From: Macrostomum lignano
Taxonomy: Eukaryota
Assembly: GCA_002269645.1 (NCBI GenBank)
Contig: NIVC01001715.1
Location: forward strand, 1 to 64,000
Direction: 5' to 3'
DNA length: 64,000 bases
Under the pieces are notes generated by a model. It made no database searches. It saw nothing but the letters and a program-made list of their open reading frames with translations, and had not been told where the DNA came from. Of the stretch, positions 8,550 to 28,637 are shown piece by piece; positions within the stretch are counted from its first letter, which is position 1, and the number at the start of each line of letters is the position of its first letter. The translations under genes were made by a program, and so were the position numbers.

Positions 8550-10847
8550 TCATCCGCAGGCAGCGCCAGCAGCCAGTAGCCGCATCTCCACCCGGCCCTG
8601 CTTGCTGCCCGAGTTGCCGCCAGTCACGGCGGTGCAGTCGACGCCGCCGCAAAATGAGCCGCCGCCACCGCCGGCGTGGCCTGGGGCCATCCCGGCACCG
8701 CCGCCGCTGAAGCCGCCTCCGGCACCAGCAGCACCTCCATTAATGTCGGCGTTTCCGCCGCCGCCTCCGCCGCCGAATCCGCCGTCTCCGGAGCTGCCGC
8801 TGCCGGCCTGACCTCCCACCCAGCTCTGGTCGATGCCGCCGCCTCTCTCGCCGTCGCCCAGCCCTCGTCTGGCGTTGACAGCCCGGCCAAGCCAGCCGGC
8901 GCCGCAGCCACCGTGCTGATTATTGCTCGGGGTTGCACTGGGATCGTTAAGTCCCGGCTTACCGTTGGCTCCACCGACGCCATTGTAGAGTTGATTAACG
9001 CCGAGTGAGCCGCTGCCATTCCCTCCGGACGATCCAATATTTCCTGCGGGAAGTTGCCGATGGCGTTGCGCCAGAGAACCCAGGCCATCCTGCAACTATT
9101 TTTTACGTAAACCTAAAATCTCTTAAAAGGTACAAAAGGATCAAGCCTTTTGTCTAAGGTGGGGTGGCATAGAAAACACCCACTCTCCCATTGTACGCGC
9201 TGAGTCGCGCATCCAAAGCCTGAAGTAAAAATCGGGCAGCAAAAGTCCAGGCACCATCGGATCCCACGGAAGCGCCGCCACCGCCACCGGCCGCCAGGTA
9301 CAGCTGCCCGTCGCTCGCTCCGTACACGAAGCTGCCGCCGCCGCCGCCGCAGCCAGCCGTTGAGGGGGCTGCCGGGCCGCCTGCCTGACCGACCACGATC
9401 GACAGCCGCGACCCGCCAGTCAGGTTGAAGCTGCCGGCCGCTGAGGCGCCTCTGCCGCCTGCTTTACCATAGACAGCGTTGTCACCTCCGGCCGCTCCGA
9501 AGGCCTCGATGCGGTAGCAGCCGGTGATGTTGATCGTCAGGTGCTGGACGGACCCGTTGCGACCCGTGCTCGAGTCTGTGAGAAGTAATTTTATGACTTT
9601 GCAGGTTGAGAGTCCCAGACTCGTCTTGCACCCAATGGCGGTCCACCGAAGGGCTTGCACTCAAAAACCCTATGAACCTGGCCTCCAGAGTGAGTTAGAT
9701 GCATTTTGTTCTGACTTTGAAGCAATTTTAGAATTTCAAAAACGTTTAAAATATACCGGTAACTTCAGTGCGCTTACTGGACAGAACGACAGTGAGGTTC
9801 TTCAGCTGCCTCTGCTGCACGGTCTGCTCAAAGTCGGCCACCTTCCACACCTGCAGCTCGCCAGTCGAGCTGTTGCCGAACCGCCTGGCTACGTGAGTGC
9901 CCGGCGGTCCCAGCTGCTTCGAGGCGTCATTGATGAAGAGCAGCTCGCAGATGCCGGACTTGCCGGAGCTGGAGGCGACGGCGTCGCAGTTTCTGGCTGA
10001 GCACTGCAGCAGGCAGTCGGTAGCTGAGCGCATGCGGCTCAGGAGGACGACCTCGCTGCTGGAGGCGTCCGTCAGCTCGACTGGCTGCTCAGAGGCGGTG
10101 AAGCTGATGGAATCGAGCTGCACTGCCACCGCTGGGAGCAGCACTGAAATGGTGGCGGATAGATAGATAGATAGATAGATAGATAGATAGATAGATAGAC
10201 AGATAGATAGATAGATAGATAGATAGATAGATAGATAGATAGATAGATAGATAGACAGATAGATAGATAGATAGATAGATAGATAGATAGATAGATAGAT
10301 AGATAGATAGATAGATAGATAGATAGATAGATAGATAGATAGATAGATAGATAGATAGATAGATAGATAGATAGATAGATAGATAGATAGATAGATAGAT
10401 AGATAGATAGATAGATAGATAGATAGATAGATAGATAGATAGATAGATAGATAGATAGATAGATAGATAGATAGATAGATAGATAGATAGATAGATAGAT
10501 AGATAGATAGATAGATAGATAGATAGATAGATAGATAGATAGATAGATAGATAGATAGATAGATAGATAGATAGATAGATAGATAGATAGATAGATAGAT
10601 AGATAGATAGATAGATAGATAGATAGATAGATAGATAGATAGATAGATAGATAGATAGATAGATAGATAGATAGATAGATAGATAGATAGATAGATAGAT
10701 AGATAGATAGATAGATAGATAGATAGATAGATAGATAGATAGATAGATAGATAGATAGATAGATAGATAGATAGATAGATAGATAGATAGATATAAATAG
10801 ATCTTACCAAACAAGGGAAGTAGCTGGCACGCCAATGCGCTGTGCAT
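8550..10847 (-). CDS. Secreted PAN/apple-like + ALK/LTK-type glycine-rich domain protein, paralogue 1, ~434 aa
   Basis: Exons 10847-10808 ([13 protein letters not shown]), 10143-9778 (VLLPAVAV; [17 protein letters not shown]...GICEL), 9659-9255 ([22 protein letters not shown]...GGGGGSFVY...LAAGGGGG) and 9043-8550 (GGCGAGW...GGFGGGGGG...[10 protein letters not shown]). All introns are phase 1. Exon 3 and 4 lengths (405, 494) equal those of copies 2 and 4. The intron-3 donor (gtgcct) and exon-3 acceptor (tgag) are weak. Confidence 0.78.
10159..10792. repeat. (GATA)n microsatellite filling intron 1 of paralogue 1
   Basis: Directly visible. Explains the YLSI ORFs. Confidence 0.98.
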
Positions 10848-11279
10848 GTTAGAAAATGTTTGAAGAAAGCCTGGGCAGTCGATGCAAATTTTAAGAGTAA
10901 GCCTAGAAATTTGCCAACTTAATGCAAATTTTATTTCTATTTATTCCCTTTAGTCGATAATTTCCATTTAGTTCCATCGTTTATTCAATGAGAGACTTTA
11001 TGACAGACAGGGGTCAAGTTTTAATGAGCATTTTTTAATCTCATAATTGCAGCTCATGGCCTCCGCCTCCGTTAACCCACTAACCGCTTGTTAGAGCTGA
11101 CAAAAATGCATTAGTTTGCCTGCAGCAACGAATGAAGTTTTGAGCGTTGCCGTTTAATGGGGGCCCGTGGAATCCATCAGCAGCATTTCATCATTCTATT
11201 GGATCTGATAACAGCGATGCAGGATGAAATATTTGCAACATCATGAGCATTGCTAGCGAGCAAACGGAATCTACGGTGG

Positions 11280-28030: not shown

Positions 28031-28637
28031 TATGAGAAGTATTTTGTTGCAGATATTGCACATAGGCTAAGCAAAGCAAAAACGCTGACCGTTTGAATAG
28101 AGTGTTTATAAAATATAGAGACCAATGGTCATGGAAACTTGCCAATAATTGTTTTTCAGCAAAGATATTTTTCTAGCTCATCCCATCATTTTTTTTTGGT
28201 GGATTTATTACTGTCATCCGCAAATTTTAATTAGCATTTTTTCTAGCAGTTACTGCGCAAGGCCTCTGGCCAAAAAGTTATGGGAATGGAATAGTTTGCG
28301 GTTGTATAATGCATGCGGACTAGCTGGCAGTCGATTCATTGCTTCCGCGTTCCTGGATATCATTAGCGTTGGGCCAACGCTGTTTGGGGAGCTGTCTAAA
28401 CGGCTTCCCCATAGGAGAAGCTTCATTTAATTATCTCTGGTTCATTGTTTTTTATTCCACCTCACTCCGTCAACGGCTTGGATGTAAACAGGAAGCTCTA
28501 TCTCCTGTGCAGCTGGATGCGAAGACCTGCAGGGCCCCTTTATTACAGGTGCAGTTGGTTTGGCGCAAACAGTATATCGATTTCCTGGCAGAATGGCGAT
28601 ATGTTGTGTTATGCAAAGTTATGAAATGCACTCCTGC

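Follow-up and report, generated by a model that had tools for sequence, protein, structure and literature searches.

Introduction

To our knowledge, the polyglycine-II TG domain (TNF-like plus glycine-rich) has been studied experimentally only in the receptor tyrosine kinases (RTKs) ALK and LTK and in a few phage fibres. Here we analyze a stretch of 64,000 nucleotides from the flatworm Macrostomum lignano (NCBI GenBank assembly GCA_002269645.1, contig NIVC01001715.1, positions 1 to 64,000), hereafter the window, whose minus strand carries four head-to-tail copies (A-D) of one gene at a spacing of ~5.6-5.9 kb. The intact copies encode proteins in which a TG module follows a PAN-like module. We demonstrate that these proteins are homologous to the ligand-binding domain of ALK and LTK, yet stand outside the RTK family. 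Moreover, we propose that the cluster supplies secreted proteins that act in soluble form in extracellular binding or recognition, a reading that we hold to be probable, although well short of certain.

In ALK and LTK (PF12810; PDB 7lrz, 7n00, 7nwz, 7nx0, 7lir), the TG module starts with a strand-helix-strand element, continues through a series of glycine runs and closes with a final strand, and all of these features recur in the flatworm proteins. However, the flatworm proteins are without the EGF-like, transmembrane, kinase, MAM and LDLa parts of the receptors, and the initial CGAxGxxGPTxxQC hairpin is missing as well. They carry a PAN module in front, are ~400 aa long and are predicted to be secreted.

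The same fold is found in phage fibres, including Pam3 gp24 (7ypx) and gp38 of Salmonella phage S16. The TNF-like domain and the glycine-rich domain of Pam3 gp24 recognize the host receptor via variable loop tips that are carried on conserved glycine stems (PMC9608196). Phage fibres and flatworm proteins resemble each other in the polyglycine lattice on a beta-sandwich and in extracellular recognition, which for the flatworm proteins is the function proposed here. Unlike the flatworm proteins, the fibres belong to the virion, form trimers, carry a helical shaft at the N-terminus and have fewer glycine motifs, and sequence similarity between the two is very low.

For the N-terminal module, the closest described domains are the PAN/apple domains (Pfam PF00024, PROSITE PS50948) of HGF, plasminogen, factor XI/prekallikrein and apicomplexan microneme lectins. 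These place a helix on an antiparallel sheet and contain two disulfides (C-x3-C...C...C), an arrangement that is tentatively predicted for the flatworm module. The flatworm module is too divergent for Pfam, and it has four cysteines versus the six of true apple domains.

Results

Four tandem copies of one gene

The original prediction, made from the DNA letters alone, described four colinear paralogues with phase-1 exons of 40, 366, 405 and 494 bp. The copies, their order and the exons of 40, 366 and 494 bp were confirmed, with GT-AG borders and phase 1 in each case. Exon 3, on the other hand, very probably measures 321 bp, and the coordinates below follow this version.

8550-10847, minus strand: copy A, intact gene; exons 10847-10808 (40 bp), 10143-9778 (366 bp), 9575-9255 (321 bp) and 9043-8550 (494 bp)
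14794-16747, minus strand: copy B, intact gene; exons 16747-16708, 16283-15918, 15707-15387 and 15287-14794
20331-22463, minus strand: copy C, pseudogene; lesions in exons 1, 2 and 4 and at the intron 2 splice sites
25662-28030, minus strand: copy D, intact gene; exons 28030-27991, 27658-27293, 26573-26253 and 26155-25662

The stop codon of copy A is TGA (8552-8550). In copy B, the 406-aa protein is laid out as a signal peptide (residues 1-~22), the PAN-like module (~26-100), the TG module (~108-402) and a cysteine at position 405.

The C-terminal TG module

One third of residues 140-406 (33%) are glycine, and all motifs quoted in the original prediction are present, those of the PAN-like module as well as those of the glycine-rich series. 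The module begins at about residue 108 with the strand-helix-strand element ahead of the first glycine run and ends with the final strand GRVEVRLLA, about 5-9 residues short of the stop. The coral homologues stop at this same point, and it is here that the EGF-like domain of ALK starts.

A phmmer search with a single sequence found the ALK ectodomain at E=2.4e-4, via the non-glycine part of the protein. A family profile searched against the PDB retrieved ALK (E=2.2e-33), LTK (1.6e-29) and C. elegans SCD-2 (6.7e-18) over the full ligand-binding region, corresponding to residues 34-341 of the ALK construct, in agreement with the ALK/LTK-type glycine-rich domain that had been proposed. Identity to ALK is 22-26%.

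Structure prediction gave the same result. The AlphaFold2 model of the whole protein had a mean predicted local distance difference test score (pLDDT) of 85.7, with values >90 across most of residues 140-400. A Foldseek comparison of such a model with ALK/LTK structures had been suggested together with the original prediction, and it returned a match: the top 21 PDB entries were all ALK, LTK or SCD-2 (E 2e-11 to 1e-6, probability 1.0). ALK/LTK matches had E values of 2e-11 to 4e-9, the best being E=2.3e-11, and a target-normalised template modelling (TM) score of ~0.6. The next match after these was the cyanophage Pam3 fibre (7ypx; E=0.036). Taken together, profile and model identify the C-terminal two-thirds of the protein as a true ALK/LTK TG module, with a predicted TNF-like beta-sandwich and polyglycine-II helix lattice.

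Secretion, cysteines and the absence of receptor parts

The sole strongly hydrophobic 19-mer of the protein (Kyte-Doolittle >2) lies within residues 1-23, where residues 3-21 score 2.5. A-V-A precedes the likely signal cleavage site, in line with the signal peptide originally predicted from the sequence, and pLDDT falls to <50 over residues 1-25. With nine residues, the tail at the C-terminus is too short to hold a glycosylphosphatidylinositol signal. Six N-x-S/T sequons are present. The best explanation of these sequence features is that the proteins are secreted and N-glycosylated, with a size of ~40 kDa. Exon 1 and the signal peptide of copy D are unlike those of A and B. Copy D also has an in-frame ATG at 28063, 33 nt upstream of the ATG positionally homologous to that of A and B; if used, it would make the N-region of the signal peptide 11 residues longer.

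The mature protein contains nine cysteines: the four of the PAN-like module, C155/C289, C374/C379 and C405. C155 and C289 are both present only in the flatworm family, whereas C374/C379 are common to the corals. C405 is the penultimate residue, followed by a final Gly (codons at 8553-8558 in A, 14797-14802 in B and 25665-25670 in D), and a cysteine is kept near the C-terminus of the paralogues with complete ends. Judged from this pattern, C405 may be unpaired and available for an intermolecular disulfide.

The exons might alternatively belong to an ordinary RTK ectodomain, with membrane and kinase exons further downstream, and UniProt rules do call some members of the family 'receptor protein-tyrosine kinase'. 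However, the in-frame stop codon directly follows the last TG strand in each copy, and the next copy begins ~4 kb on. Open reading frame (ORF) and Pfam scans run on the window found no kinase (Pkinase) or EGF-like exon, and a gene for a transient receptor potential (TRP)-like channel lies downstream of the cluster. Moreover, the UniProt entries so named are only 270-340 aa long and have no kinase domain, and phage proteins bear the identical label. We consider the chance that these are receptor exons to be close to negligible, and this reading was rejected. The original description of proteins lacking transmembrane and kinase parts thus holds.

The N-terminal PAN-like module

Residues ~26-100 contain the pattern C57-x3-C61-x4-C66-x12-C79-E-L. 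C57 and C61 fall in a predicted helix (54-63), and C66 and C79 at predicted strands (68-72 and 79-85); the four PAN cysteine columns are common to coral PAN_1 domains. In the paralogue P0108, PAN_1 scores 23.5 bits, above the gathering cut-off of 21.4 bits, and the PAN-like domain of the window matches P0108 at E=1.4e-7; in the 98%-identical fragment P0104, PAN_1 scores 15.8 bits. Two further paralogues, P0003 and P0006, are labelled 'Apple domain-containing' in UniProt. Profile-profile alignment (hhalign) with Pfam-positive coral PAN domains gave E=8e-4 over the cysteine core.

Modelled alone, the domain reached a pLDDT of 75.5. In Foldseek, six of the seven best matches of this model were PAN/apple proteins, all of them weak (E 0.065-0.7, TM score 0.40-0.45). 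They included HGF NK2 (E=0.065, probability 0.98), plasminogen (E=0.13, probability 0.96), apple 4 of factor XI (E=0.36), a PAN-bearing fungal copper oxidase and the lectin SML-2 (E=0.68). The third disulfide of apple domains, which have six cysteines and whose N- and C-termini it joins, was not found; residues 26-135 hold four cysteines only. With moderate confidence, cysteine pattern and model point to a divergent four-cysteine PAN domain and not to a six-cysteine apple domain. The PAN/apple-like module of the original prediction is thus retained, on weaker support than the TG module.

An exhaustive search with the N-terminal 121 aa returned only 11 clusters. All of these relatives are Macrostomum-type, and they therefore give no outside clue to the function of the module.

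The exon 3 border and protein length

The original prediction reported open 434-aa frames in three copies. With a 405-bp exon 3, the frames of A, B and D are indeed open over this length, and in this version exon 3 begins as follows.

9659 (copy A), 15791 (copy B) and 26657 (copy D), minus strand: start of exon 3 in the 405-bp version, with the borders originally predicted

An alternative acceptor 84 nt downstream (ttctcacag/ACTCGAG, the slash marking the splice site) yields a 321-bp exon 3, again in phase 1, and a 406-aa protein. In the 321-bp model, ...GTTCTGTCCA is joined to ACTCGAGCACGG; in the 405-bp model, ...GTTCTGTCCA is joined to TGCAAGCCC.

Homology favors the shorter version. The 28-aa insert that the 405-bp exon would add occurs in none of 29 aligned homologues, and it is also absent from the Macrostomum-type relatives P0105, P0109 and P0110 and from the public model of copy D (A0A1I8FFP5, P0001). 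The sequence that results from the shorter exon (NLSVEVGSEGPLKGIQ) aligns to ALK without a gap. The 321-bp splice forms an N-S-S sequon that is conserved among the paralogues, and the pyrimidine tract is better at ttctcacag/ACTCGAG than at gtttgag/TGCAAG. Furthermore, the copies differ at 8 of the extra 84 nt, compared with 11 of 687 positions in the flanking exons (Fisher p=4e-4). An exact-sequence look-up in a public protein collection found neither the 406-aa nor the 434-aa version and did not decide between the two models. The sequence evidence indicates that the 405-bp exon is very probably an 84-nt 5' over-extension, the products being 406 aa long and encoded by exons of 40, 366, 321 and 494 bp. 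The 434-aa model was dropped on homology. The splice between exons 1 and 2 is supported by P0104, a 119-aa fragment that is 98% identical to exons 1 and 2 of copy B.

Relatives in databases

The best protein matches are all from Macrostomum lignano, which has more than 12 divergent paralogues. Among these matches, P0001 (UniProt A0A1I8FFP5) agrees fully with copy D in long segments, including the C-terminal part, and is a fused and frame-shifted model named 'Calmodulin'. The entries P0001, P0004, P0007, P0009, P0012 and P0013 go by the names 'Calmodulin', 'Myosin motor domain-containing', 'receptor protein-tyrosine kinase' and 'PE-PGRS family protein', and none has a kinase domain; glycine-rich proteins of phages are also called 'receptor protein-tyrosine kinase'. 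These misleading automatic names stem from fused gene models or rule-based naming.

Beyond flatworms, the same architecture is found in predicted, uncharacterised proteins of reef corals. In P0092 (Stylophora pistillata LOC111330165) and P0076, both PAN_1 and ALK_LTK_GRD, the Pfam glycine-rich domain (GRD) of ALK and LTK, score above threshold. These proteins are like the flatworm family in the order of signal peptide, PAN and TG, in length (~375 aa) and in end point, and the PAN cysteine pattern and the C-E-L motif are common to both. In the glycine-rich domain, the coral proteins are 32-42% identical to the flatworm proteins. They retain an ALK-like GAxGPxGPT segment but are without the C155/C289 pair and the C-terminal cysteine of the flatworm family. 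P0018 and P0022, from Pocillopora/Acropora, are PAN-EGF-GRD proteins, with EGF domains between PAN and GRD. The gene for P0076 is intronless (L001 8103-9236, on a 10-kb contig of the Tara coral metagenome), in contrast to the four-exon flatworm genes; this 10-kb contig held no informative neighbor genes.

Further matches come from bacteria, where the proteins bear type IX secretion system (T9SS), PEP-CTERM or autotransporter sorting domains, and from viruses, where 74 predicted structures in BFVD matched with E<=1e-3; many of these belong to tail or virion proteins. Glycine-rich domains of a related kind are common in surface proteins of bacteria and in the receptor-binding fibres of phages. 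The original prediction knew of no characterised family with this architecture. A literature search likewise found nothing on flatworm or coral PAN-GRD proteins, although the architecture itself is not unique, as the coral predictions demonstrate. The family is uncharacterised but not new to databases, given that unreviewed UniProt entries exist and that corals have the same architecture.

Divergence and integrity of the copies

Across the whole protein, the pairwise ratio of nonsynonymous to synonymous divergence (pN/pS) among A, B and D is ~0.5, with 26-45 synonymous differences per pair, which indicates that the intact copies are under constraint. Divergence is unevenly spread along the gene. 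Exon 2 (e.g. 15918-16283) is 99.5-100% identical across the three copies, and pS reaches up to 0.44 in the opening third of exon 4 (e.g. 15110-15287). Copy A departs in sequence from B and D over the last part of exon 3, intron 3 and the first part of exon 4, with exon lengths unchanged; intron 3 is 211 bp long in this copy versus 99 bp. This mosaic in the aligned sequences suggests that gene conversion has been restricted to the 5' half of the gene.

Copy C is a pseudogene. Its exon 1 contains a TAG stop. Exon 2, which is 73% identical to that of copy B, has lost 23 bp by deletion and carries a TGG>TGA change. Intron 2 has neither splice site left (exon-2 donor TCCA/aaaag; exon-3 acceptor ccaa/ACTCGAG), and a 45-bp deletion takes 14 residues out of exon 4.

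With one of the four copies clearly degenerate, in a region dense in micro- and minisatellites and with no poly(A) signals near the stops, the array as a whole might be non-functional, consisting of decaying recent duplicates or of an assembly artefact. However, three copies keep 1221-nt open frames and every splice site, and pN/pS of ~0.5 together with the number of synonymous differences argues against decay. The copies differ from each other and thus are not collapsed or duplicated assembly errors, and the same genes have been modelled independently in public entries (P0001, P0104). We regard a non-functional array as very improbable, and its assembly-artefact form was rejected because the copies are distinct.

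Discussion

Soluble recognition proteins as the proposed function

Wherever something is known about the TG module, it is an extracellular binding device. By analogy, we infer that the flatworm proteins may be soluble binding or recognition proteins, which we think is the probable reading. In such a protein, the partner of the PAN module would be a glycan or a protein, and a second partner would be bound by the TG module via the loops that join the glycine helices. The amino-acid differences among the intact copies cluster in three loops between glycine runs (residues ~239-268, 281-286 and 361-365). These are the only strongly differing sites, which suggests loop-mediated binding on the same principle as the phage loop tips. 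C405 could join two molecules into a covalent dimer or anchor the protein in a matrix. An expansion specific to the lineage, along with tandem duplication, would fit a role that faces the environment, for example in immune recognition, in adhesion or mucus, or in reproductive secretion.

Several results weigh against this interpretation. A direct Pfam call on the spliced proteins, which had been proposed as a check of the original prediction, put neither PAN_1 nor ALK_LTK_GRD above threshold: PAN_1 (PF00024; gathering 21.4 bits) found nothing on the window protein, and ALK_LTK_GRD (PF12810; gathering 24.5 bits) gave 9.9 bits (E=0.88) on copy B and no match on copy A. The sub-threshold score of ALK_LTK_GRD arises because the correction for composition bias (glycine) strips most of it; the same model scores 16-27 bits in paralogues and 31-33 bits in coral relatives. 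Diversifying selection on the variable loops was not detected, since pN/pS is <1 everywhere, in a test that is weak with three near-identical copies. Finally, no AATAAA or ATTAAA was found within ~900 nt of the stop of any copy.

The high glycine content also brings to mind a structural secretion, in which the proteins would form a glycine-rich, disulfide-cross-linked part of mucus, adhesive, eggshell or a cuticle-like matrix. The 33% glycine over residues 140-406, the odd number of cysteines with a conserved one at the C-terminus, and a tandem amplification that would suit high expression are consistent with this role, and PAN modules are found in matrix and mucus proteins. However, rather than being low-complexity filler, the glycine runs build a globular domain that is compact, predicted with confidence and homologous to the ligand-binding domain of a receptor. 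The protein is also small, and apart from the single cysteine it has no repeats or polymer-forming modules. A structural secretion seems unlikely to us.

Homology to ALK raises another alternative, namely that the proteins act as a soluble decoy or ligand trap for an ALK ligand of the flatworm itself (Jeb-, HEN-1- or ALKAL-like) and thereby tune ALK signaling. Homology between the TG module and ALK/LTK spans the whole module and covers the ALKAL-binding part of the receptors, a region for which ligand complexes have been solved (PDB 7nwz, 7n00, 7ls0). However, identity to ALK is as low as given above, the number of divergent paralogues in M. lignano would be odd for a decoy of a single ligand, and corals, bacteria and phages have the module without a link to ALK signaling. 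We judge a decoy to be distinctly improbable.

A more far-reaching form of the recognition hypothesis concerns the origin of the fold. The flatworm and coral proteins could be survivors of an ancient family of soluble recognition proteins of the PAN-TG type in metazoans that was the source of the ligand-binding module of ALK and LTK, with variable loops on the rigid polyglycine lattice recognizing the surfaces of microbes or mating partners in the manner of phage tips. This idea is speculative, and we would put it forward only tentatively. If it is true, animals would have in these proteins a new class of molecule for pattern recognition or adhesion.

A small, soluble, free-standing animal TG module with a PAN module offers a tractable system for asking what the fold binds beyond cytokine signaling. 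PAN-TG proteins bear on the origin of the ALK ligand-binding domain and on whether animals, like phages, use the TG fold for recognition. Transgenesis and RNA interference exist for Macrostomum lignano, so the function of the genes is testable. In addition, the present work gives the gene models a corrected length of 406 aa and flags the misleading automatic names of family members.

Neighboring genes and repeats in the window

The cluster is flanked by genes of other families.

2195-6852, minus strand: ankyrin and Ion_trans domains, TRP-like channel, downstream neighbor
40207-40638, minus strand: exon of a major facilitator superfamily (MFS) transporter, neighbor gene
42400-57510, plus strand: class C G-protein-coupled receptor (GPCR), with ANF_receptor at 44419-44664 and 7tm_3 at 57127-57510

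Copies A, B and C have intergenic DNA in common, chiefly minisatellites with units of 33 bp and 21 bp, which belong to a common tandem unit of ~5.9 kb. The arrays of 21-bp units set in ~70 nt past the stop codons. Inside the genes, a (GATA)n or (TAGG)n microsatellite fills intron 1 almost wholly.

10158-10793 (636 bp, copy A), 16298-16693 (396 bp, copy B) and 27675-27974 (300 bp, copy D): (GATA)n or (TAGG)n microsatellite in intron 1
14119-14724 (after copy B), 20013-20261 (after copy C) and 25015-25592 (after copy D): 21-bp minisatellite
11744-12502 and 17846-18404: 33-bp minisatellite

Downstream of B and C, the intergenic unit contains a conserved 95-codon ORF on the minus strand (13822-14109 and 19716-20003). 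No Pfam family matches this ORF, and it is probably non-coding. Further along the window, GC skew becomes extreme at positions 36001-40000 (up to 0.73), with an AT skew of 0.43, and this segment is probably a purine-rich repeat.

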